Below are positions 34,558-50,018 of a stretch of DNA of 64,000 bases, in pieces. A model generated the notes under the pieces. That model was not told where the DNA came from. It saw only the letters and a list, made by a program, of their open reading frames with translations, and made no database searches. The translations under genes were made by a program, and so were the position numbers. The stretch comes from Trichoplax adhaerens (lineage: Eukaryota > Animalia > Placozoa), in assembly GCF_000150275.1 (NCBI RefSeq), contig NW_002060958.1:1382088-1446087 (forward strand), in the 5' to 3' direction. Numbering within the stretch: position 1 is the stretch's first letter; each line of letters opens with the position of its first letter.

Positions 34558-35358
34558 TAACATCCAATCGCTAGAAATCCTATTTAGGCAAATATTAATT
34601 CTTGGTAAGTGTAAAGCGTAGACTTTTTGAGGCAAATGCAATCAATTAATACTACATCATCCAAGGCATATCTTTTTTTTCTAAAATAATAGCTTGATAT
34701 CTTCAAATGCACGATTTCAAAACAAATTTGTACTACTGTTAACTTCGAGATTAATTTTATCACAGGTCGGCACAGATCATGATATGCAACACGGGATATA
34801 AGACACCTTTACCTCGACAAGAGAGCATTTTTATCTTCGAAATTCAACCATAAAATTTGGAGTATATGATGAGCTTTCTACCTTGCTGTATCTATACCAG
34901 AGGACCTTCAACGTACCACATGTAAAAAATTGCATCCAAAGCTATCAGCTAAGGATTCTTCACGAACTAATACCTACATCCACCAACTTTTGCTATGAAG
35001 CTACTTAGTATTACAAGTAGACTTACATATCGCATAAGTTCATTTTATGAAGTTACTTAAATATAACAATTTCAACTTATTTATAATCCATACATTCACT
35101 TGATTCTGGGGATGGCATAAATCGAATAGACTATTAATAATTATTTTATATACGGTGCTGTAAATCAAAGCATAGGATTTATTTGAAAACTTGCTATGCA
35201 AGTACCATAGCGAAAGATCATAAGAGTTTGAAAATTATTGCCTTTATTGTAAAATTTTACTTGAACACATTCTCTTTATCCAGAATTACTTAAGCAAGAC
35301 TACTATCTAAAAATTGTACAAAGTGGAATTATAATGGGATAATGATAGAATACACCTG

Positions 35359-36683
35359 TTATTGAGTAAAATATGCCGGAACGATATCAAATATCAGTTT
35401 ATACAAGTTTTTACTAAACAACATACAGTTTTCGGATCTAAGCAACTGATGTAATTTTATTCCTATATTGATTTCTTTCTTCTTGTGAACTTCTCTAAAT
35501 TTTCCTGTCTCGCATTCAAGATCGTGATATTCGAGAATGTCAACGACGTTAATTATTGCTGCCTCTCGTAAATCACTCCATAACTCTTCATGGCTGGCAA
35601 TTCTGTAGCTGTTAATTCGCTTATGTCTAACGCTACTAATCTGGCTAACATAGCTTTTTTCCGCGATTACAGCACCGGTCACATTATCTCGTCTAATAAA
35701 AGGACCTTTATCCAACAAGGAATCTTGAAACTTTGAATTACCTTCTATTTTCTGCGTATCGCCGCCACATAAACTAATCCTAACGTCACCCAATCCAGAT
35801 TCATTTTTATAATCAATTTTAGCAAACAATGTATCCTCTTTATTTGTCATCAGTTGCATGTCAGTATCATAATCGGCATAACGATGAATATTAAAATCAG
35901 TAGGTTTAAATGTAATTCTAAAACTTCTTTCTTACTTAGAAATGGTAAGGATAAATTATGGAGAGTATCCTTTTGATTATAATTAAGTTTGCAACAGACT
36001 GGATAGAATGAAGTTTTGATGGTACTATATTTCTTTGAAGGTGTCGTTGTAGGCTAAAATCCGTTAACAAAAGTTTTAAACTTATGGATGGGCATTCTCT
36101 TTTGACGCAAATCTAAACCGGTTACTAAAATATAACCGTATCGGATAGTTGCAAATAAGTTTTCCATAGCTACAGAATCAATCTGCTTATTCATAACATC
36201 ATTTATCCAGTGCTGCAATATAAGTGTTAAATCGTTAATGTCAACTTGGCTAGTATCCACAGTGTGTTTTAGATAAGGTGTATAAAATTGCTTATGGGTA
36301 TCACACTCATAACGACGGATGAAATTGTTGTCTTCCTTAATTTGCACCAATTGGTCGTCATCAATTGAACCTCTTATTAATAAGAACTTCCAAATTTGTA
36401 AATGATTAACTTGATCACCGTCTTTCGGTAAAGGCTGATGTTTGTTGTTGCTTTTTACATTCAGAGCTTCAAGATCACTAGTTCGCTTATTAAGTCTACT
36501 TTGGTAATTATCAACATAATTTGTTCTATAGCTATTCCAATTGTAGGCATGAGGATGAGAAGAACTTTTGTCATGTTTAGCCCTCCAACTTAATTGCTTT
36601 TCTGCACAATTTAAACTTTTCTTTCCAACTGAGTCTAAACCTATTTTCTTCAAATTGTTATCATCAACATCTTTAGACGCCAT
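35359..36683 (-). pseudogene. Pseudogene of the intronless unnamed-domain family (MASKDVDD...VPAYFTQ)
   Basis: ORFs 36054-36749 and 35359-35859 are the two halves of the 473-aa paralog. In-frame TAG at 36054-36056 is followed by IKTSFYP, then a frameshift near 35925 before SFRITF...YADYD. Confidence 0.9.
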
Positions 36684-39644
36684 TTTCTTTACGTGAGTTT
36701 TAACTATCAAGACTTCTTGAACCAATAACAATCCAGTACGTAGAAGCATATCGTTCCAAGGGATATTTAGAAAGCTTTTTGTTATTGTTTCTGGCCAGTG
36801 CTAACACAATAAGTTGCTGCAGTCGAATAAAATCTTGTATCAAGAGTGCAAACATCCTTATTAACTACTATTGTCACATTATTATAATCGTTAGACCGCT
36901 TTTGTCTAAATTAAGAAAAAAAATTCTCACTTGTGTTCTCATCTGTTCTCCTGATTATAGCATGTCAATTTTGCTATATTAGCTCAACTTGTGAACTTTT
37001 ACGTATACCATCATTCAATGAATTCATAGCTAGGATACATCTAATTATATAAGCCAAGAAATGGTTACTTAGTCTTACTACGATAATATATGGATTTATA
37101 ATACATACAGTAAGTACCGCTACGATCGGAATCTACTGTAAAAAAAGCACTATAGCAATTTCACAGCAACACTCGCTCTTTTCACGAATTACCCATAGTA
37201 ACAATAGGGAAGATAATTTTTCATTGCGATAATTAAGCCAACTGAAGCAAATTTCGAATATTTTATATTGCTGTCTTAAAACAAATATAATTATTTGGAT
37301 TCAAAAAACGTAAAAGTGTCCAGAGAGTTCCATCTTAAAACTGGGTTTATTTTCTCAAGAAAATTCCCATGATATAGAATATAGCCTGCTTGTAAACAAA
37401 TTTTTACTCATTATACAAACATTAATTTAGGCTTGGTCAAATTGATAAACATATCATCGTAAGCTCTTATATAATTATAATTTCGTATTCTTCTTGTCTA
37501 AATCAACTAATCATGCCTGTGCTATCGAACATATGTTTCCATCTATCGCAACAAAACAACTAATAACAGTTCATAGTAAACTTTATATCGTTAATTAAAC
37601 AACATTAGTCATACATATCCTCTCTAAACACATCCAGATCTAACTAGCGTACAATAATCAAGAAAGGTAGTGTTTACCATAAGTTATCTTATAAAATACG
37701 ACTATTGTTATGCTATGTTTTTTGGCTTTCCAAAGAAAAATACAATAGAGTGCTTAGTTCTTATTATGACTCCTTTTAACATTTCATTCTAGCATTATCA
37801 GGCTGCGTTAAACTAGTAACGATTTTAGTTCATCTAAACTAGCACAAAATTTCCAACCCATGATAACGGCAGTATTCATAATAATACGTAAAACTTGCGA
37901 TATTCTATAATCATGGTATCAATACGTGGAATAAATACTTATTTGAAGTACATCAGCTAGTTTTCAATATTTCTATGAGCTCCACTAAATGTAGTACATA
38001 GCTAAACAGCTTTATATTGAGTTATTAGCCGACTCATACCGTACTAAGAGCTTATTATTTACTTTTTAATTAGCACACTCATCATAAGCGCATTAGTAAT
38101 TTCATATCTTAATCATTTTGCAAATGACTTTACGTTTATTAAAAGCGTTACAAAATAGTAGCGAGGTATACAGCAAATAAAAGATCGATCTACACAATCT
38201 ACTTTACTGTATCTGCTATTAAAAGATCTATGCAGTAGCAAAGGGTAGCTTACGCCAATTGCTCGCAGCGAACAACTGGTGGCTCACGCATAGTAGTAAA
38301 TTGGAAGTGATTGTTGTATAATTATAATTATAATTAACAGTTTCCTTATACAATTTCAAAAGTTCCCATATATTCTGATTTTACTAAAGATAATCTTAGG
38401 TGCAGAATGATTTCAAAACGATTTAACGTGCCAATAAATTGTACTATACTAAAAGTATCTAAAGGATTATATCGCCATTTACAGAACATTACCCTTGGGT
38501 ATTAGCGGAACTTTTATAATCTATTCTGTTTCAAATTTTTAGATTATTAAAGCTGTTTAAACTTATCTTCATCAAATATACAGTAAACACAATATTCAGC
38601 AGTATATACTGCTCGTATTAAAGAATAATCTTATATTTCTTTCCAAATATTGAATAGCATATCGCATTAGCTATCTCGAAATAAATAGATCTGTCATCGA
38701 TGAAGCTCTTTATCTATAACTACTTCTAAGCTATGAAGAAAATGATTTTAAATAGATTTTAACAATACTTTCTCCGTTACAAATAGCTTAATTCACATTC
38801 GAAGCCTACCTAAGCTCGCTAATAGAGCCAGCTCAGTATCGGATTGATTGTTTTCATATATCCTTGAGGAAGAAAAGAATTAAAGAATTAAAGCGAAGAA
38901 TACATACGACAAATAAAATGGGATCTCGATTTATAGAAATTTATCCCATTTTATTTTCCTATTTATCCTATTTAGGCAAATACTAATTATTGGTTATAAT
39001 TTAAGTGTAAAGCGTAGACTTTTTGAGGTAAATGTAATCAATCAGTACTACATCATCCAAGGCATATCTCCATTTTTTCTAAAATAATAGCCTGATATCT
39101 TCAAATTCAGGATTTCAACACAAATTCGAATACAGTTGTAATAAAATTCAAATGCAAAGAAGACGTTAGTGTGGATAGCAATAGCTTAATTACAATATAT
39201 TGAAAGTTTAATGTTAAACGGAGGATAAAAGTAACTATTAACAGGAAGACTTCACTTCATATACAACGGGCAAACATCATTTGCCATCTTATAAGGTATA
39301 ATAGCTTCCTAAGTAATTCAGTCGGAGCTTCTACTAATACCAAAGTTTCTCATATTATAATTATCGTCTATCTTTCCAAATGCGGCATAGATAACAACTG
39401 ACTACATTATTCATATAATTTTAGTCGATAACACTATTATCCTTCGTTATATAATAGAAGTAAAGCTTACAGTAGTTCTTAGCATTCTTAGATACAGAAA
39501 CAGTATGGGAAACTCCATAGTGATTCTTTCAACTTGCTGTTGTGCATTCACATTGTAAGATAAAGGAACAGCATAAGAAATGGTACTGTACTTGCGCCTC
39601 TACATACTTCTACGATTTTACTGTCTATTACTGATCATCTATTA

Positions 39645-40275
39645 ATGGCTAGCTTGATTGGAGATGAGAGAACAGGTTCGATTTTGCCAATTCCAAGAAT
39701 GAATTTATCATCATCGGGTTTTGATGTGCCTGTTCGACTAATTAGGCATCAATTTCCCGTTCGGCTAGCATTTACATCGACTATTAATAAAAGTCAAGAG
39801 GAAATATTTCATCGACGCGATGTAATGTTAAGCGGAGATTTATTTACACATGGACAGCTATATGTTGCAATAAAGAGAGTCGGGAATCCAAGAGATTTAC
39901 TAATATACACAAGTCAGGCAGAACAGTTTATAAATCGAGATAGGCAAACAATTTACGATTCCTCAAGCGATTGTTTTTGAGCACGTAATGCCGTCTATCA
40001 AGAAGTTCAATGAAGTTCTGAAATTTGTGTAATTGAATGTAATAAAAATGTAATTGTACAATTATTAGGCATTATATTTGCATGATAATTTGTTATCTTT
40101 TTTGTCTATTACAGTACAGTATTAAATTAGTGCAAACGGCAACCCGGGGTAAAATTTAGTCACGATTAGAAATAGCATACTGAGATTATTCAATTATTAG
40201 AGTAATGTTTAAATAATAGTTAACGTGTTAACAGTACAACCGGGAGCAAGGTGGGGGGGGGGGGGGATGAGCTAG
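39645..40275 (+). mobile_element. Helitron remnant: C-terminal PIF1-type helicase fragment and 3' end
   Basis: IPRMNL...RHQFPVRLAFTSTINKSQ...LFTHGQLYVAIKRV, then RNAVYQEVQ* past a stop; AATAAA at 40041; GC-rich degenerate tract and gCTAG|T at 40272-40275. Confidence 0.85.
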
Positions 40276-40369
40276 TAATCATAATAGATAATTTATCGCT
40301 ACTAATATAGGATCTCCTATATCAACGTCAACAGCTATTTAAGTTAGTTAATCTCGCTAACCTTACAAC

Positions 40370-41730
40370 TGTTAACCTCGAAGTTAATTTCATCACATTC
40401 CAGCATAGACTTTTTCGAGGCAAATGCAATCAATCAATGCTATACCATCTAAAGCAGATATCCTTTTTTTTAAAGTAATGGCTTGATATTTTCAAATACA
40501 TGATTTATTCACAAATTCAGCATACTGTATAATTAACTTCAAAGTCAATTTTTTCCCTTGCCGAAATAGATTCTGATATTCAATACTAGAAATAAGACAC
40601 CTTTACTTCGACAAGAGTGAATTTTTATCTTCGAAATTCAACCATAAAGTTAAAGTCTAAGATAAATTGTCTGCCTTGTTGTATCTATATCTAAGGGCCT
40701 CAGCGTACTACATGTAAAAACTGTATCCAAAGTTTTCAGCTAAAGATTCTTCATGAACTTATACCTTCATCTATGAATTTTTATTATAAAGCTACGTAGC
40801 ATTTCAAGCAGACTTACATATCGCAAAACCACATTTATGAAATTACTTAGATATAACTTTCATATTATTTATAATCCATACATTCACATGATTCTAAGGA
40901 TAACCTCAATCGAATAGACAATTGATAATCATTTTTACATACGTTATTGTCAACTAAATAGCTACCTTCTACATTCTAAAGATAGAATTCATTAGAAAAC
41001 TTGTAATGCGAGTGCCAAAGTAAATGATCATAAAATTTGTAAATTATTGTTTTAATTACAAAATTTCGCTTGAGCATATTCTCTTCATCAAGAAGATTTA
41101 CTTAAGCAAGACTACTATCCAAAACTTGTACAAAGTGGAAACATTACTGATAAAATGTTAAGTAAAATATGCTGGAACGATATCAAATATCAGTTTATAC
41201 AAATTTTTACTAAACAAGAAAGAGTTTTTGTGACTAAGTAATTGATGTAATTTTATTCCTATATTGATTTCTTTCTTCTTGTGAACTTCTCTAAATTCGC
41301 CAGTCTCATAATCAAGATCGTGATATTCGAGAATGTTGAGTTATTAGCCAACACATGCCTTACTAAGAGCTTACTATTTACTCCATAATTAGTGCGCACT
41401 CATCATAAGCGCTTTGCTTATATCATATTATCATCACTTTGCAAATGATTTTACGTTTATTTAAAGCATTGCAAAATAATAGCAAGGCATACAGCAAATA
41501 CATTGTCGATTCCTACACAATCTACTCTACCGTATCTACCATTGAAAGTTCTTGAGCAATAGTAAAGAGCAACTTACGCCTATCTTTCGTGGCTGACAAC
41601 TGGTAGTTTACGCATGATAGTAAATTCGAACTGATTGCAGTATAATTATAATTAACAGTTTTTTTCTCCTTATACAATTTTGAAATTCCCTTATACTCTT
41701 ATTTTACAGGAAATAATCTATGGTGCAGAA
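40370..41730. repeat. Internally deleted duplicate of the ~34600-38410 block
   Basis: ~40400-41337 matches ~34620-35541, then jumps to match ~38019-38410 (gagttattagcc...ggtgcagaa). 38968-39125 is a further copy of 34580-34730. Confidence 0.85.
41158..41337 (-). pseudogene. C-terminal fragment of the unnamed-domain family
   Basis: Near-identical to 35362-35541; reads ILEYHDLDYETGEFREVHKKKEINIGIKLHQLLSHKNSFLFSKNLYKLIFDIVPAYFT*. Confidence 0.9.
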
Positions 41731-41964
41731 ATAGCGGGAAAATAGAAGTGTCTATAATAATTATTTAGTAATGCTTCAGTTGATTGATTGATTATTATAA
41801 ACTAATTATACACATTTAAAATCGCATCAACTTGATGAATATTATTTAGATAGCACTCTCTACTTTATTTACTAACTATATTGCAAGACAGAATAACAAT
41901 CAAAGGCATACAGTAAGTCATCAATTATTAGAAAGCTTTACCTTTATTTTTAATTTGCATTACG

Positions 41965-43386
41965 TTAATTATCACGCAGGTAAGCCGGTAAAATAGTATA
42001 GATTATACTATGTAAATTTTGAGCTAGCAACTGACAGTATTCACGTCTGAATATTGAGCTTAGTTGGATTCCCAAATTAACTTCTAATTTTTCATGAATT
42101 TCGTTAAATTTACCTGTTTTGCGATCTAATTGCAGGTATTCCGCAATTTTCGAAACATTGATGACTGTGGCCATTCGCAACTCATCCCATAGCTCCGCAT
42201 TAGCGGCAAACTTTAAGGTCTTTATTTTCTTATGCCTAACATTGCTTATTCTCTTAGTACAGGCTTTCTCTACTATTACAGCACCACTTGTTTCTTCTAG
42301 TTTTATAAGTGGAGATTCATCAGTTATAGTATTTAGCCTTTGGGCAAGAAGTGCTTCCGTGCATTCAGAATTATTTTTCGCGATCGAAATTCGAACATCA
42401 TTTCCTCCAGTAGGATCTTTGATATCCAGTTTTAAATAAGCTATGTCTTCCTTGCTACTTATTAGATTCATTTGGCTATCATAGTCTATATAACTACGAA
42501 TTTTGCTGTCTTGAGTGACAAACGAGATTCTAAATGTTTCCCATTCTTCATCTAAAACCAAGGATGAGCTTTTATCTAGGCTGTCATATTTACATGGATA
42601 CTTATTGTAGATGGGAAAGAAAGCAGTTTTAATACGACATATTCGCTTTCTTTTAGGATTACTACTGTTAGCTGAAGGTGACATCCAATTCAGATGCTGT
42701 TTCAATTGTTGATGTGACATTCGATCAACATATGGTTCTAGATTTGTTATATAGAAACAACCGTAACAAACTTTGATGAACATTTGGTCCATATCTGAAG
42801 GATCGATGCACTCAGTCATAACATTATCAATCCATTGCTGGAATATAGCGGAAAATTCTCGGATTTCTTTCCTGTCATCATTTTGAAATTGCGAAATATA
42901 AGGAGTATAATATATTATTTCATCACCGTCAGTACCATAACAAGCATCTAAATGCTTTCTAAATTCTACTATTTGGTCATCTGAGCAGGAACCACGCAAT
43001 CTAAACAATTTCCACGCTTTTACTTTTTCATTATGTGATCTTCGGTTACTTAAGCATTTGTTGCCACGATTTTGCCTAGATCCATTATTGAAAGCATTTG
43101 AATTGAAATTTTGATTGCGACTAAAGTTTTGTTCGCCACGATGGCTTCGACTTGAAGAATCATTATTTCGGTAACTACTATGATGATAGTTTTTACTATC
43201 TTGTGAATTAAAATTTCGGCTGTAATTAGGTGTTCTCCTGGTGTTGTTAGTTTGTCGTTGATTGCTATGTGGAGGGGCACTGTTACTAGCAGATTTTGGT
43301 AGTTTGATATTCTTTATTCCATCAATGCATTCATCGAAAGATTTTTCGTAACCATTGCCATCATTCTGATGTGAGCTGGAAGCCAT
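41965..43386 (-). CDS. Intronless 473-aa protein: N/S/R-rich disordered N-terminus plus one copy of the unnamed domain (possible CYTH/triphosphate-tunnel-like fold)
   Basis: Long ORF in AT-rich DNA, collinear with the three repeats of the 1290-aa protein and with the pseudogene at 35359. Confidence 0.9.
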   Translation of the reverse strand: MASSSHQNDGNGYEKSFDECIDGIKNIKLPKSASNSAPPHSNQRQTNNTRRTPNYSRNFNSQDSKNYHHSSYRNNDSSSRSHRGEQNFSRNQNFNSNAFNNGSRQNRGNKCLSNRRSHNEKVKAWKLFRLRGSCSDDQIVEFRKHLDACYGTDGDEIIYYTPYISQFQNDDRKEIREFSAIFQQWIDNVMTECIDPSDMDQMFIKVCYGCFYITNLEPYVDRMSHQQLKQHLNWMSPSANSSNPKRKRICRIKTAFFPIYNKYPCKYDSLDKSSSLVLDEEWETFRISFVTQDSKIRSYIDYDSQMNLISSKEDIAYLKLDIKDPTGGNDVRISIAKNNSECTEALLAQRLNTITDESPLIKLEETSGAVIVEKACTKRISNVRHKKIKTLKFAANAELWDELRMATVINVSKIAEYLQLDRKTGKFNEIHEKLEVNLGIQLSSIFRREYCQLLAQNLHSIIYTILPAYLRDN

Positions 43387-45711
43387 TTCTGCGTGTAAGA
43401 TAGTTTTTATAGTAGATAGTAGCCAATATGGAAATTCTTTGGCAATTATAGCCTAAGCCTAACCGCGGATTTACATATGCCTGTTAGAAAAAATGATGAC
43501 ATTGGTATGATCGATTTTCCGTGATTATAGTCTGTATTTATTCAACACAGCTGGGGTGCACTAATTTATTCATTCAACTATTATACATTCTATCCATGAA
43601 AGAATTGGTTATTGTTATAATTGATGTAATAATAACGCAGACTAAATTTATTTCCCTAGTTACTAGTATGTCAGCAGCTATACTTCTACAGATTATAATA
43701 CCAACTAATCAAACTTACTGATGTCTCATGGTTCAATTTCTCAACACGACCAGTAAAGTTTATGAATAGTGTTTCCTATAGGAAAGTATCATAACACTAT
43801 ATTACTTTTTATCTCTAACTCATATAGAATTGCTCTCATTAATTTATATCCAAACTGACGACGAAATCACATGAATAGGTTAGACGTAGGCATCCAATCG
43901 GAGATGATAAGCTACGCAAAGATTCACGAAATGCAAAATTGATTTAAAATGATTGTGGCCGAAAAATTCTATTTACTTAATTGATATAAGAAATCATTAA
44001 GAATCACAATTAACGCTTTTAGTATAAACATAGCAGTAAATCTTTCTAATAATAAAACAAATATTTTTTCTTCGTGCATTAACTAAACAGTTGTTACTTA
44101 ATATGTCCGACAGAATTTCTATCTATAACCACTTATTAAAGCAACACACCCAATATCGCAAAACTACAAATGTTACCCTCTAGGCTACTACAGAAATACT
44201 ATATTCTACCGTACTACTATCGGAATATTAGTAAGGATAAAGACCATTGCGTTACAGTCACTTCATAACATATGGGTTACAAATCGAAATTTATAACAAG
44301 AAAAAGTTAAACTACTACAGAAAACTAGTACTATAAGTCTATTATCAGATTTGTCTTCCACGACTTCTACCAGCAGTACAACTCTAAATAATAACAATCT
44401 CCTATCGTCATGAGAAATAGTAACTCTATCAGTCTCTTTTAGACAAAATTGAAACCAAACTTTATTGAAAAGTCAAGCAACAGATAGTAAATCGACGTAA
44501 ACATTTAATGTTTGTAGATAATATTCTACAGCAATGTAGATATCTATTAAAACGTCATAGATAATTTATTACTAATACATTCCTAGATAAGTTATCTTAT
44601 GGAAATTATGTTACGACAGTGATACAAAAGTTACTACTTAACAATAAGAAGGAAACAATATATGTGTTTGCTTAATCTGCTTTATGTCGGAAATTAATGC
44701 AAATTATGCTTACTCTTGCATAGTTTCAGTTATGACATCATGCAAATGCGGAAGTAAAATCTTACTACTTATTGAGAAAGCACGTAGCACCTACGTTGGG
44801 TACTACTATCGAAGCATTAACAATCTGTAGTAATTTCAGCTAATTACAGTAATTTTGTGTAGGCAATACAGCGATAGTATGTACACAATTATAATTTAAT
44901 CACATATTTCAAAGCAAAGTCGGTTTTGGATTCTAATTAGTTAAGCTGCCTTCTTAGTTTAAAAATAGTTTCCGCAAGTAATGACTTTGAACCAATTACT
45001 GAGGAAATTGAGTCAAATACTAACAGTATTAGAGTTTATTTGCAATATGTTGAGTGTTTACCACTAGATATTAAATAGAAGCAAAAATTCCAGTTGTAGT
45101 AACTAATAGGCAAGAAAGCAGCCAAGATTAAACTTCAGCATAAACGAAAAATAGATTTGCTCAAAAATAAGAATTGAAGTTTATTTCATAAGAATAGAGT
45201 TTAAGTACAAACCAGAACGTTAACTGTTAATTTACGATATTTAACTTTACGTACAATGTTCACCGCATGAATTTGCCATCGTGTTTCAGCTAGCGTTGAG
45301 CTATTAAATTATCATTTAAGACAATATCAACTAATACATTTCGTAGCAATTAATTCTGATACGTTTTGTTATTTCGTATAGAACTGTATTATGCATGATC
45401 AGACTTTGTAGATATTTGGGACAAGTTATAATCTATATTTACTCTATATAAAAGTGAGGAATTTGTTGTTGGCATCACTTTTTACGTATCATGTTCTAAC
45501 TTGACTATCTTAGCCTTTCAAGGATTGATAGTAAAGGCTTAAATTGCTTATTTATTTTTCTGTTAAGTAATGGATAAATAGCTGTCAGATGAAATTATGA
45601 TTGGATTATGTAAATACATATACCCGTACCTTTAATTTATAATAACTATAAATTATATGTGATTCATGACAATCCATTAAAGGATAGTGTTTCATGGCCT
45701 ATTATTGACCA

Positions 45712-48700
45712 TTATTGACTACTTAAATATCTCGGTAAAATTGTAAACATTAATTTGTGTAAATTTTCTGCTAATAACCGACAGTTTTCTTGACGTATCA
45801 TCGAATCCAATTGAAATCTGATGTTGACTTCTACTTTTTCATGCCTTTCATGAAATCGACCACTAGATCGATCTAACATGAAATATTCTACAACATCAGC
45901 AATTCTGACGGTAATTGCTTGTCGTAATTTATCCCACAACGGGACATTATCCGATAACTTGAAATGTCTTGCTTTTTTGTGTCTAACGTTATATACAAAG
46001 TCTGTATATACCTTTCCTACCATGACGTGATCAGTATATCGATCTCTAGTTAAAATGGCAGGCTCATCTGCTTCCATTTTGAACATCTTTGAGGAAAGTT
46101 TCTCATTTTCAAATTCATTATTATGAATAGAAATTCGCGCATCTCGTCCTTTACCGGAATTTTTGATATCTAGTTTTAAATACGTTTTATCTTCGTAATT
46201 AGCTATCAATTCCATCTGATCGTTGAAATCGGCGTAATCTAAAATTTTGCTATCACCAGAGTTAAAGGCAATTCTATATGTTTCACCGACATGATCCAAA
46301 ACTAACGCTCCACTTTTAGCTATATCATCGTCATAATTTTCGTAGGCAGGGTAAAAGCCCGTTCTTATCGTACGATGGAATTCATAGGAATTCTTCTTCT
46401 TCCTACGAGGTGGGAGCATAATCTTAAGTAGGTCTTCTTTAAATTCTTCAACTGTCATTCTATACGTGTATGGCTTTAGTTCGGTTAGGTAAACGTGACC
46501 ATAGCGAAGTTTCATATAAAATTTGGGTAGTTTTGAAGCAATAGCATAATTTCTCTCCGCTGTACTAATCCATTTCTGGAGCTTGTTCGATAACTCGTTA
46601 ATTTCTTCATAATCAGTATTATAATTATACGTGATATGTGGTGCGTAAAACGGATTACTATTATTCGCTAAAGCTCTATAATATCTATCCATTCGATAAC
46701 AGGCATCCTTATCATATTCATGAAATTCTACTATTTGATAGTCCATGTAAGAATGACGCAATAAAAGGAACTTAATCTTTGTATTGTTACGTCTGCGATT
46801 AGAAGGGCCTCTATTCCCGAAAAGTTTTCGAAATTTGTTCTTGAAGACACTTCGATAATACTGATTGCTACGTAGAGTTCGTTTTACCAAATATTCTGGC
46901 AATATTGTAAACATTATCTTGTGTAAATTTTGTGCTAACATGTGGCAATCCCCACTTTGCAGGATTGAATTTAATGGCATCTTAACGTTCAGTTCTTTAC
47001 TTGTAAATGATTTCTTAAATCGGCCAGTACTTTTATCTAATTGAGAATAGTTTGTAGTATCTGTAACCTGTATAATAATTAGCTGTCTTAGATCCTCTGA
47101 TAAATCTACTTGTGCCGAGAACTTGAAATATTTTGTTCGGTTGCGCCTAACATTTCGAATATACTCCGTATATGCCTTTCCCACAATGATGTCGCCAGCA
47201 GTTTTATCTCGTGTTATGATTGGACACTTATCTATAGCTATATCTTGCCATTTAGATGGAATATCTTGTGTATTCTGATAGTCATTTCCAATGAAAGAAA
47301 TTCGAAAATCTTTTCCATAGCCAGAATTTTTAACATCAAACTTTAAGTATGTTCTATCTTCGTTATAAGATATTAACTCTATCTCGTCGTTAGCGAATTT
47401 ACAATCGGCATAAGCACAAATTCTATAGTCATCGATATCGAAGGCAATTCTGAATATTTCCTCTTCATGATCCAAAACCAATAATGGCTTCTCTTGCAAA
47501 TCAGCGTAGTCGAGTAGATCTTTATGACAGTTAGAAGTAAAACCGGTTAAGATGCGATTATCAGGATTTACTTGACGACTGTTTAGACGTTCTTTAAATT
47601 GAGTAATTGGCATTTCTGTAACGAACGGTTGTAGTTTTGCTAAGTACATACGACCACATCGAATGCTAGCGTTTAAGTTGTCAAATACTGAAGGATCACT
47701 GCATTCTGCCACAACTTTACCTATCCATAGCTGGAACATTGTCGATAATTCCTCGATTTCATCATTGCAAGTATCAGGTGTAGGTAAAATCCGAGAATAT
47801 GGTAAAGGCCTGCTGCTACTATTTAATGGCTTATAATTTATTTTGAAATTGCAGCCAAAACCTTCACGCTCATAAAATTTTACTTTCTGACTATGCCCAG
47901 AAGAGTGACGTAGTAATACTAATTTCCATGTTTTGAATTGCTCGTGAGGTAGCCTACCGTTTAATAATTTCATTTTCCCATCATCCTGTCGATAACCGTG
48001 TTTAGACATTTTAGGGTTCCAATTTCGACTCCATTTCACTATTTGATGGCCATATTGATTTAGCTTTACAAAGTATTTAGGCAAAGTGATGAAAATTAAC
48101 TTGTGCAAATTTTCCGCAAATAGCGTCAAGTTTTCAAGCCGTAGTATTGAGTTTAATTTAATTCTAATATTTATCTCTGCCTTATCAAGTCGTCGATTAA
48201 ATCGACCGATCTTTCGATCTAAGTAAGAATATTCGATGATATCTGAAGCTTCGATGACGATATTCTGTCGTAGAGCTTCCCATATTTCGACATCTTTGGA
48301 TAATTTAAAAAATTTCGTCTTCTTACAACGAACATGACGAACGTCGCCATATTCTTTTGCTACAACGATATCATCAGTATCTCTATTATATTGTAGAATA
48401 GGAGTAGATTTTTTTATCGTAGTATTTTTTCTATACCCTGCGACAGTTTCCGTCCCATTTTGACAATTATTACCAGTAATGGAAATCTGGACATCGGGAG
48501 AACATGGAGAATTTCGGATGTCAAATTGTAAATAAGTCATGCTATTATCTTTACGTATCAATTCCATTCGATTATTATAGTCAGCCTGCTGGTATATTTT
48601 GTTTTTATCATAACCTGAAACGACTGTAAATGTTTGTTCTTCGTTATCCAAAATTAATGGTGGATTTCTTTCTAATTGATCGTACTTAGGCAAATAATTA

Positions 48701-49584
48701 TCATTAATAGGAGAAAAGCCAGTTGAGATGCAAATTCTCCGTTTCATTAAAGGATTATTGCCGTGAGCTGATGGCGAAATCTGATTGAGATGTTTCTTAA
48801 AATCCGGAGCTGGCATTTGATCGACAAACGGTCTTGGAACATCTACATAGACCAAACCATATCGAATATTGGCGTTTAAATGATTAAATGTGGAATCAGT
48901 AATCTTCCCCTTGATTTCAGTTAGCGATGACTGGAGCATTACTGATAAATCATTTATTTCATCTTGATTACTAGGACAGATAGGAGAAAGATGTGGAATA
49001 TAAAATGGTTCGCTACCACCTGATGATTTACTGATGGTATCCATACCATAACCAGAATCATTGTAAGTTCGAAGTTCTACCGTCTGCTTATCCCCATATG
49101 AATGGCGCAAAAAAAATAATGATTTGGGAGACTGGATTTCATCTCGAGATCGACCAACTTTTGTGTTGTAATTTTGTCTGGAATCATTATTAGAAAAATC
49201 GGAATTAAAACTTGGATTCCGATGAAAAGTCCGACCGCCACTTTTTTTCCAGCTTGATCGATCGTTACTCGGAGCACGATCTCGCTGTTCATGATAAGTC
49301 GAACTTGTTTTCAAATTTGTATTCCCATCAAGTAGCGGATTTCTACGTTGTCTCCAGTTCGAAGAATCGGACCGACTGGGGTTGGCATTATCGTAGAAAT
49401 TGGTGGTAGCCCCTGGACGCTTACCAGAGCCTCGTTCACTATTTTGCTTGCTTCGTTCATAAGTCGGAGCAAAGCGATGTCGACTAGTCGGTTGAGAAAA
49501 TGTTGAATCCGGTTTGTTATTAGCTCTATGATTTAAAGACCTTTCAGAGGAACTTTCCTCCCCGTGAGGTATCTTGGAGGCCAT
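45712..49584 (-). CDS. Intronless 1290-aa protein: R/S/N-rich N-terminus plus three tandem copies of the unnamed domain (~49125-48070, ~47935-46890, ~46780-45712)
   Basis: LRHS, IR(Y/C)G, TGF, LVLD..E..FRI, YLK.D.KN...D.RIS, VR.KK, LDR..GRF and NLHK..F..LP.Y each occur three times. Confidence 0.93.
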   Translation of the reverse strand: MASKIPHGEESSSERSLNHRANNKPDSTFSQPTSRHRFAPTYERSKQNSERGSGKRPGATTNFYDNANPSRSDSSNWRQRRNPLLDGNTNLKTSSTYHEQRDRAPSNDRSSWKKSGGRTFHRNPSFNSDFSNNDSRQNYNTKVGRSRDEIQSPKSLFFLRHSYGDKQTVELRTYNDSGYGMDTISKSSGGSEPFYIPHLSPICPSNQDEINDLSVMLQSSLTEIKGKITDSTFNHLNANIRYGLVYVDVPRPFVDQMPAPDFKKHLNQISPSAHGNNPLMKRRICISTGFSPINDNYLPKYDQLERNPPLILDNEEQTFTVVSGYDKNKIYQQADYNNRMELIRKDNSMTYLQFDIRNSPCSPDVQISITGNNCQNGTETVAGYRKNTTIKKSTPILQYNRDTDDIVVAKEYGDVRHVRCKKTKFFKLSKDVEIWEALRQNIVIEASDIIEYSYLDRKIGRFNRRLDKAEINIRIKLNSILRLENLTLFAENLHKLIFITLPKYFVKLNQYGHQIVKWSRNWNPKMSKHGYRQDDGKMKLLNGRLPHEQFKTWKLVLLRHSSGHSQKVKFYEREGFGCNFKINYKPLNSSSRPLPYSRILPTPDTCNDEIEELSTMFQLWIGKVVAECSDPSVFDNLNASIRCGRMYLAKLQPFVTEMPITQFKERLNSRQVNPDNRILTGFTSNCHKDLLDYADLQEKPLLVLDHEEEIFRIAFDIDDYRICAYADCKFANDEIELISYNEDRTYLKFDVKNSGYGKDFRISFIGNDYQNTQDIPSKWQDIAIDKCPIITRDKTAGDIIVGKAYTEYIRNVRRNRTKYFKFSAQVDLSEDLRQLIIIQVTDTTNYSQLDKSTGRFKKSFTSKELNVKMPLNSILQSGDCHMLAQNLHKIMFTILPEYLVKRTLRSNQYYRSVFKNKFRKLFGNRGPSNRRRNNTKIKFLLLRHSYMDYQIVEFHEYDKDACYRMDRYYRALANNSNPFYAPHITYNYNTDYEEINELSNKLQKWISTAERNYAIASKLPKFYMKLRYGHVYLTELKPYTYRMTVEEFKEDLLKIMLPPRRKKKNSYEFHRTIRTGFYPAYENYDDDIAKSGALVLDHVGETYRIAFNSGDSKILDYADFNDQMELIANYEDKTYLKLDIKNSGKGRDARISIHNNEFENEKLSSKMFKMEADEPAILTRDRYTDHVMVGKVYTDFVYNVRHKKARHFKLSDNVPLWDKLRQAITVRIADVVEYFMLDRSSGRFHERHEKVEVNIRFQLDSMIRQENCRLLAENLHKLMFTILPRYLSSQ

Positions 49585-49675
49585 TTTCTAGGAATAGAAT
49601 AATCTTTTAATCAAACTGTGATGTTTCAGAAAGTTGAGAGTTCGGCATTAGTCGCAATAAAGTACACGTATGAGT

Positions 49676-50018
49676 AACGACGTAACCAGTCGAATAACTA
49701 TAGTAGTATAGAATAACACTACCAGGACTAACGAATGAGATAGATGAAAGAAGATAGCTTTTGTAATGTTAAGACACAGCAGGAAGAAATTACTTCTAGG
49801 CACGGATGATTCATAATAATATGTTACTTTTATGGAAGGGTAATGCTAACGACATAACTAGTCGAATAACTATAGTAGAATAGAATAATACTACCATGAC
49901 TAACTAATGAGATAGATGAAAGAAGATAGCTTTTGTAATGTTAAGACACAGTAGGAGGAAATTACTTCTAGATACGGATGATTCATAATAATATGTTACT
50001 TTTATGGAAGGGTAATGC
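49676..50018. repeat. Two near-identical tandem copies of ~171 bp just upstream of the 1290-aa gene
   Basis: taacgac...gtcgaataactatagtag...ttttatggaagggtaatgc at 49676-49846 and 49847-50018. Confidence 0.95.

Follow-up and report, generated by a model that had tools for sequence, protein, structure and literature searches.

The closest described relatives of the domain reported here are the triphosphate-tunnel proteins. In the enzymes of this class, the triphosphate-metal complex is held by a last-strand Glu at metal site 1 that does not vary among the characterised members, and the basic residues chiefly bind the substrate (PMC4641920). A second acidic patch, site 2, positions the catalytic metal and consists of two first-strand Glu and a further last-strand Glu, which follows that of site 1 at a distance of two residues (PMC4641920). 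In Cet1 this patch is formed by E305, E307 and E496, and the gamma-phosphate is bound by R393, K409, K456 and R458 (PMC10201420). In tunnel enzymes from fungi, viruses, protozoa and bacteria, catalysis suffers when either of the first-strand Glu is mutated (PMC4641920, PMC10201420). RESC1/RESC2 (GAP2/GAP1, GRBC1/2; PDB 8cdp, 8fn4, 8fn6) of kinetoplastid mitochondria are inactive pseudoenzymes of RNA triphosphatases in which two of the three patch Glu are missing; RESC2 uses K311, R359, R402 and R424 to bind the guide RNA at its 5'-triphosphate (PMC10201420). In the literature, RESC1/2 are without sequence homology outside kinetoplastids. The Cet1/Pct1-type RNA 5'-triphosphatases (PF02940; PDB 1d8h, 4pn0, 6l7w, 2qy2) are described as usually restricted to fungi, protozoa and large DNA viruses (PMC10201420, PMC4791841), and animals cap with a cysteine-phosphatase triphosphatase (PMC4791841). 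Here we describe a gene cluster of an animal, Trichoplax adhaerens, whose products are predicted to carry a Cet1-type tunnel domain with a RESC-type residue pattern. It lies in a stretch of 64 kb, referred to as the window.

In the window, a hitherto unnamed family of proteins with a Cet1-type triphosphate-tunnel domain has undergone a local birth-and-death expansion. The window is AT-rich (33% GC) and contains few long open frames. Two of these are the intact genes A and B, which are organised as follows.

41965..43386, minus strand: gene A, an intronless open reading frame of 473 aa with a disordered N-terminus and one tunnel domain
43042-43386, minus strand: N-terminus of gene A (aa 1-115), N/S/R-rich and disordered
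41968-43041, minus strand: tunnel domain of gene A (aa 116-473), identified by tblastn, AlphaFold2 model and fold matches
45712..49584, minus strand: gene B, an intronless open reading frame of 1290 aa with a disordered N-terminus and three tandem tunnel domains
49153-49584, minus strand: N-terminus of gene B, S/N/R-rich and disordered
48070-49152, minus strand: domain B1 of gene B, identified by tblastn
46888-47955, minus strand: domain B2 of gene B, identified by tblastn
45724-46794, minus strand: domain B3 of gene B, identified by tblastn

The product of gene A is 98% identical to the hypothetical protein TrispH2_009658 of Trichoplax sp. H2. Our literature search found no paper connecting Trichoplax with triphosphate tunnels, and no mention of TrispH2_009658.

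Fold and residue pattern of the domain

The domain of gene A was modelled with AlphaFold2 on an alignment of 13 sequences and without templates, which gave a mean predicted local distance difference test score (pLDDT) of 81.8 and a predicted template-modelling score (pTM) of 0.84. A relative from amphioxus was modelled separately and reached a pLDDT of 79. In a Foldseek search of the PDB with the Trichoplax model, RESC1/RESC2 came first (E 1e-11 to 1e-8), followed by Pct1 and Cet1 (E ~1e-7), Trypanosoma cruzi Cet1 (from E 3e-5) and then CYTH proteins, mimivirus triphosphatase and Med18/20. Realignment of this list with VIA-align gave Z scores of 17.1 for RESC1 (267 residues, model residues 6-357), 13.8 for Cet1, 13.3 for Pct1, 12.1 for T. 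cruzi Cet1, 8.3 for mimivirus triphosphatase, 7.4 for YgiF and about 6 for Med18/20. A VIA-align search of 48,161 chains, which was independent of Foldseek, returned six chains with Z>=8. These were RESC1, RESC2, Cet1, Pct1, T. cruzi Cet1 and mimivirus triphosphatase, all of them tunnel proteins. The RESC matches of the Trichoplax model had Z 16.2-17.1 over residues 2-358, and the amphioxus model matched RESC2 with Z 20.7, RESC1 with Z 20.0 and Cet1 with Z 15.5. Structural alignments with RESC had a root-mean-square deviation of 3.0-3.7 over 264-275 residues, and the RESC alignments extend 40-60 residues beyond those with Cet1, taking in the N-terminal strands.

On the basis of these models the domain is a Cet1-type eight-stranded triphosphate-tunnel barrel. 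A first-pass annotation, made from the letters of the window, had called a Cet1/CYTH-like barrel from an ordered series of conserved motifs and had suggested structure prediction with Foldseek as a check. The check returns the tunnel barrel, triphosphate-tunnel proteins top all structural searches, and no unrelated characterised fold or family competes. All motifs that it listed are present in the consensus of our family alignment A1, and the case may serve as an example of a fold called correctly from motif order alone. It had not foreseen that the closest solved structures, as far as the models can tell, are RESC1/RESC2, that is, known non-catalytic tunnels. A Tubby- or scramblase-like barrel, suggested by the hydrophobic C-terminal helix, was considered as well but is not among the fold matches. 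The ESM Atlas contained no usable match for the Trichoplax domain. For the amphioxus protein it listed weak MACPF-like feature matches with a low recognition value (1870) and 131 of 256 features shared, which we regard as noise in conflict with two confident models.

Membership in the triphosphate-tunnel superfamily is given by the fold; the domain does not show the catalytic signature of the superfamily, and no Pfam model matched. A Pfam scan of 11 family proteins returned sub-threshold noise and no match at E<=1, including PF02940 and PF01928. Sequence searches of the PDB with a single protein and with profile A2 gave nothing relevant or significant, and a PF02940 match was absent from all six frames of the genome. 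A canonical CYTH match of exon size (PF01928, 26 bits, above the cut-off) was seen elsewhere in the genome at G000:C1410:8444023-8444136 (L020); it is unrelated to the tunnel family.

Residue numbers in the following refer to the domain, and the register of the first strand was set by its K/R-F/Y-G motif. The first strand of the family reads x-x-x-x-R/K-Y/F-G and has no Glu at the positions matching E305 and E307 of Cet1, with the exception of one Glu in one of the 13 sequences (P0009). The two former Glu positions are occupied by F/Y/N/W/R and by K/S/N/T/A/I/M, respectively. The last strand has the pattern K-x-E-x-N/T, in which none of the 13-16 sequences deviates from E320; N/T/S/H/Y/L is found two positions after it, and mostly K two positions before it. 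Invariant residues are G94, F141, D215, R269, F312 and E320, nearly invariant ones are D206, R217 and K271, and R/K92, K/R208 and E301 are common in the family. According to strand periodicity and motif order, the conserved charged residues are located on the polar face of amphipathic strands. Read most simply, this pattern means that the family has retained site 1 and the phosphate clamp but has lost site 2, with the exact equivalences being putative. The alignment also bears out the proposal of the first-pass annotation that the basic strands are kept and most metal-binding Glu are lost, one Glu being left in the last strand.

Four of the conserved residues, D206, D215, E301 and E320, are acidic and lie on the polar face beside conserved Arg and Lys. 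They might replace the Glu-x-Glu of the first strand in a rewired metal site, so that the domain would be an active RNA triphosphatase, NTPase, polyphosphatase or cyclase. Metal-dependent phosphohydrolases have this fold, and some tunnel proteins without the patch are catalytic, for example the polyphosphate polymerase Vtc4 (PMC4641920). We consider such an enzyme unlikely, because both first-strand Glu that are critical for catalysis are gone throughout the family save for the single Glu in P0009, and because the best structural matches are the inactive RESC1/2, whereas Vtc4 reached only Z 4-4.6 in the search of 48,161 chains.

Gene copies, transcription and relatives

Further copies were sought by tblastn in the window, using the domain (aa 116-473 of the 473-aa open reading frame) as query, and by a six-frame search of the whole genome (105.6 Mb, 1414 contigs). 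The window contains four intact domain copies of ~355 aa, one in gene A and three in gene B, and in addition one broken copy and one 3' fragment. Domains B1-B3 are 36-41% identical to the domain of gene A (E 1e-59 to 1e-75) and are connected by short basic linkers. The first-pass annotation had counted five full copies and a fragment on one strand. The fragment and the common strand, minus throughout, stand, but only four of the copies are intact and the fifth is pseudogenised. Gene B corresponds to database protein P0002, in which the profile finds three full-length matches. At the minus-strand stop frequency of 0.075 per codon, an open frame of 1290 codons would arise by chance with a probability of ~1e-44. 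The N-terminus of gene A consists of 20% N, 18% S and 10% R, with 17 K+R versus 8 D+E. Two tandem units of 172 nt (94% identical) at 49675-50018, ~90 nt upstream of the gene B start codon, are likely part of its promoter or 5' region. The remaining members of the family in this genome, all of them single-exon like genes A and B, are listed below.

35359..36749, minus strand: broken fifth copy with MAS start at 36683, one TAG, one TAA and a frameshift
41164-41334, minus strand: C-terminal fragment of a sixth copy, comprising the last ~57 aa (tblastn E 1e-10)
G000:C1397:438057-439118 (L003:1501-2562), minus strand: C1397 paralogue, an intact single-domain member of the MAS clade; frame of 432 aa starting with MASSRE, P0003 with 431 aa
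G000:C1414:7934982-7936364 (L009:1501-2886), plus strand: C1414 paralogue, a single-exon gene of 461 aa with an RG/RD-rich disordered tail and a divergent tunnel domain

The domain of the broken copy is split over two frames (35997-36401 and 35368-35925). Its N-terminal half is open up to a TAG at 36054-36056 and a TAA follows in the C-terminal half. Because of these stop codons and the change of frame, the copy is either a pseudogene or a truncated gene; its N-terminal product of 209 aa corresponds to database protein P0007. The fragment at 41164-41334 shows 90% nucleotide identity to the 3' end of the broken copy (35362-35540), and its two flanks match 34606-35540 and 38014-38366, respectively. 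It is included in a segmental duplication of 34606-35540 versus 40394-41336, with 81-94% identity over the repeat blocks found. The identity of the 3' ends and the matches of the flanks therefore identify the fragment as the remnant of a duplicate of the broken gene after an internal deletion of ~2.5 kb. As the first-pass annotation had noticed, gene A (43386), gene B (49584) and the broken gene (36683) all begin with MAS. The same start is found in the copy on the other scaffold, C1397, and in three relatives from other assemblies.

For evidence of transcription, Logan contigs from four public runs were aligned on 41400-47399. Three of the runs (X2, X6 and X8, from three studies) are transcriptome-sized, their library type being only guessed as RNA; the fourth (X16) is recorded as RNA-seq. 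Gene A is covered in each of X2, X6 and X8 by one colinear contig of 2.05-2.23 kb over ~41268-43497 without joints. For gene B, each of these runs contains a contig of 4.1-4.4 kb that starts at 44930-45319 and is colinear within the aligned stretch. Two of the gene B contigs, if colinear, reach 49589-49617, just beyond the start codon at 49584. No contig has a joint within either gene. From X16, a piece of 248 nt covers 42254-42501 of gene A, and gene B is represented by a 1151-nt piece and by part of a 3218-nt contig. Contig depth is about 0-1 across 43600-43999 and, except for short repeat-like pieces, stays well under that of the genes up to ~44800. This pattern is as expected from unspliced mRNAs and points to transcription of both genes, although the contigs give no proof of exact ends, strand or expression level. 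Among 29 variants in the contigs, 15 are synonymous and 14 non-synonymous; with a site ratio of ~1:4 the ratio of non-synonymous to synonymous polymorphism per site (pN/pS) is ~0.23, a rough value from mixed strains. This indicates that the genes are under purifying selection.

Several features of the transcribed region are recorded here separately. The gene A contigs run ~700 nt past the stop codon (41268-41964) and overlap part of the decayed fragment, and the remnant would therefore be transcribed within the 3' untranslated region of gene A. Between genes A and B, a short dispersed sequence at 44826-44883 is matched over ~35-57 nt by many contigs of all four runs, which then diverge and reach depths of up to 143-680; it is probably a small repeated element. 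Two runs each contain a contig that lacks 286 nt at 44297-44584. The ends of this skip (AA..CC, with 22 nt on the shorter side) fit no canonical intron in either orientation; it may reflect a polymorphic indel or an artefact of repeats. Elsewhere in the window, an open frame on the minus strand at 17037-17363 matches the N-terminal domain of NAD-dependent glycerol-3-phosphate dehydrogenase (PF01210, E 5.8e-7) and probably represents one exon of a neighbouring gene that is spliced.

A profile of five Trichoplax domains matched 12 of 1.84 billion representative proteins. These include the products of the window itself and the 431-aa protein of the other scaffold. Three matches with E 1e-88 to 1e-95 have the MAS start, and five are distant (E 1e-5 to 1e-3), one of them being the uncharacterised amphioxus protein LOC144870863. 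Judging from 35-77% identity and the MAS start, P0004-P0006 and P0012 are probably proteins of other placozoans. Further word-indexed protein searches turned up near-identical or known members only. In hhalign, the placozoan cluster and the broad group of distant proteins aligned over 331 columns with a probability of 99.1% (E 7.7e-19). The two sequence sets therefore form one family, albeit a sparse one, in which placozoan and amphioxus proteins share ~15% identity. Hence, the family is not confined to placozoans and has distant relatives including amphioxus, which goes beyond the first-pass annotation.

A maximum-likelihood tree gives full support to the MAS clade, whose branch is long. The four intact domains of the window are monophyletic (91/96) and B1-B3 group together (90/90); consequently, the cluster originated by local duplication and internal triplication. 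The C1397 member falls outside the cluster of the window. The C1414 gene is the Trichoplax member of the broad group, which contains the amphioxus proteins, and pairs there with a relative of 77% identity.

A role in defence or genome conflict would fit the local duplication, the decay of copies and the expansion within one lineage, but is only a suggestion. The first-pass annotation had likewise put forward a sensor or antiviral effector as a possible role. A separate reading is that the cluster was domesticated from a virus or mobile element, for example from the capping enzyme of a giant virus. This concerns origin and would be compatible with any mechanism. All family genes of this genome are single-exon, tandem copies occur together with decay products, and the fold is common to the capping triphosphatases of giant viruses. 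Predicted viral structures, all of them giant-virus capping triphosphatases, nevertheless match less well than RESC and Cet1 (best E 4e-6, TM 0.33-0.39). The search with alignment A1, the placozoan profile, found no relative in 2.9 million viral contigs or in JGI metagenome contigs. Neither inverted nor long terminal repeats were found beside the genes, and the relatives in other animals sit in large chromosome-scale contigs. We do not favour such an origin and regard it as very improbable.

Proposed ligand and alternative readings

We propose that the domain is a non-catalytic triphosphate clamp with the 5'-triphosphate end of RNA as its favoured ligand, a model-based reading to which we give about an even chance. 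The tunnel would bind a triphosphate-Mg complex via E320 and the basic residues R92, K208, R217, R269 and K271. Without the acidic patch for the catalytic second metal, the ligand would be held and not hydrolysed. The likeliest ligand would be the 5'-triphosphate end of an uncapped RNA, and the basic N/S/R-rich tail (RG/RD-rich in the C1414 paralogue) may add unspecific RNA contacts. In the three-domain protein of gene B, avidity or bridging could result, with several ends bound or several RNAs bridged. RNA is favoured because the nearest structures are RNA-end binders and RNA triphosphatases rather than small-molecule CYTH proteins, and because every member has a basic low-complexity tail.

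The same residue pattern would equally serve a non-catalytic binder or sensor of another phosphate compound, such as a nucleoside triphosphate, tri- or polyphosphate, an inositol pyrophosphate or a 5'-triphosphorylated oligonucleotide messenger, and the tunnel class as a whole binds many triphosphorylated ligands (PMC4641920, PMC9582702). We judge this improbable in view of the structural ranking, with RNA-end binders at Z 17-21 and RNA triphosphatases at 13-15 versus 5-8 for the small CYTH proteins. The match to the RNA proteins moreover extends to the N-terminal strands and to the additional elements that follow the D-x-R strand, and the basic tails, RG/RD-rich in one paralogue, suit a nucleic acid.

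A third reading dispenses with a ligand and assumes that the tunnel is reused for protein-protein contacts, as in Med18/Med20 or in the inert RESC1. The structural searches do return Med18/20 (Z 6-7), RESC1 is not an RNA binder (PMC10201420), and the catalytic motif is gone. The alternating Arg/Lys/Asp/Glu residues are, however, invariant between placozoans and amphioxus at ~15% identity, which is hard to explain without a charged ligand, and the scores of Med18/20 are far under those of RESC and Cet1. A pure scaffold therefore seems quite improbable.

Several points weigh against a clamp for RNA 5' ends. The tunnel-facing orientation of the conserved residues was derived from strand periodicity and motif order, not from superposition. 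The conserved D206, D215, E301 and E320 could form a different metal site, and the ligand could be a nucleotide, polyphosphate or inositol pyrophosphate. RESC1, which has the same fold, does not bind RNA, and the likeness to RESC2 is one of fold and motif order, any counterparts of its K311, R359, R402 and R424 being putative. RESC1 proteins are the sole PDB sequences touched by the broad-group profile A4 at E<=10 (E 0.59, 12 bits, on the D-x-R strand); this link is not significant by itself but agrees with the structural ranking. A six-frame search of the genome for an RNA-dependent RNA polymerase (PF05183) as an endogenous source of 5'-triphosphate small RNA gave no match, but since the controls were also silent this result is uninformative.

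What is new is an uncharacterised animal family with the Cet1 fold and a RESC-type pseudoenzyme signature, the placozoan member of which is, by the contig evidence, transcribed and constrained and which also occurs in amphioxus. It provides a concrete candidate for a new kind of animal 5'-triphosphate reader and a possible out-group for the origin of the trypanosome guide-RNA binders. More speculatively, animals might possess an ancient, undescribed set of RESC1/RESC2-like "dead" RNA triphosphatases that read the 5'-triphosphate ends of RNA, with the placozoan branch expanded to single- and triple-tunnel proteins that sense or sequester primary RNAs lacking a cap, be they viral, mitochondrial, made by polymerase III or of another kind. 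We put this forward tentatively and hold it to be rather doubtful. If this is true, animals would have, in addition to RIG-I and IFIT, a third structural solution for recognising 5'-triphosphates. The proteins that bind guide RNA in trypanosome editing would then have been recruited from a pre-existing eukaryotic family and not invented in kinetoplastids.

Comparison with known triphosphate-tunnel proteins

Med18/Med20 resemble the family in being a non-catalytic derivative of the same barrel that occurs in animals. They are a much weaker match and have no conserved charged tunnel, whereas the family keeps its invariant Arg, Lys, Asp and Glu residues. The CYTH/TTM proteins (PF01928), among them thiamine triphosphatase, YgiF, AtTTM3 and the archaeal SaTTM, have the superfamily fold in common with the family (Z 5-8.7). 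The single last-strand Glu that is kept may be compared with their invariant Glu of metal site 1 (PMC4641920). The domain of the family has twice their size, contains N-terminal strands and insertions absent from CYTH, and has neither the ExExK motif nor a match to PF01928.

The Cet1/Pct1-type triphosphatases are closer. The eight-stranded tunnel and its flanking helices are shared (Z 13-15.5 for fungal, 10-13.6 for T. cruzi and 8-10 for mimivirus structures), as is the order of the charged strands, K/R-F/Y-G, D-x-K, D-x-R, R-x-K and the last-strand Glu. In contrast to these enzymes the family has no Glu-x-Glu in the first strand, no second Glu in the last strand and no match to PF02940, and it is neither fused to nor located beside a guanylyltransferase.

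RESC1/RESC2 are the top structural match of both models (Z 17.1 and 20.7 over 264-275 residues, N-terminal strands included). As in RESC1/2, both first-strand Glu are lost, and one last-strand Glu and the basic residues predicted to line the tunnel are kept. A further likeness concerns the insertion of helix D and strands 12-13, which sets RESC1/2 apart from the capping enzymes (PMC10201420). The Trichoplax model has a helix (residues 229-238) and two short strands (246-248 and 255-257) between the D-x-R and R-x-K strands, which by the order of secondary-structure elements probably correspond to the "helix D and strands 12 and 13" of RESC (PMC10201420).

There are also clear differences. The identity to RESC1/2 is 9-14% with no significant sequence match, and the family occurs in animals, not in Euglenozoa. 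The N-termini are long, hydrophilic and disordered tails with no sign of a mitochondrial presequence. The family comprises single- and triple-domain proteins, whereas RESC1/2 are an obligate heterodimer of two paralogues. A homodimer prediction for the RESC-type swapped hairpin scored 0.00, in a calculation that did not use the alignment and left the fold of the partner itself uncertain, so that the score speaks neither for a dimer nor against one. To our knowledge, uridine insertion/deletion editing is not known from placozoans. Membership in the RESC family is not established at the sequence level; by comparison of the models, however, the family would work most like RESC1/RESC2.

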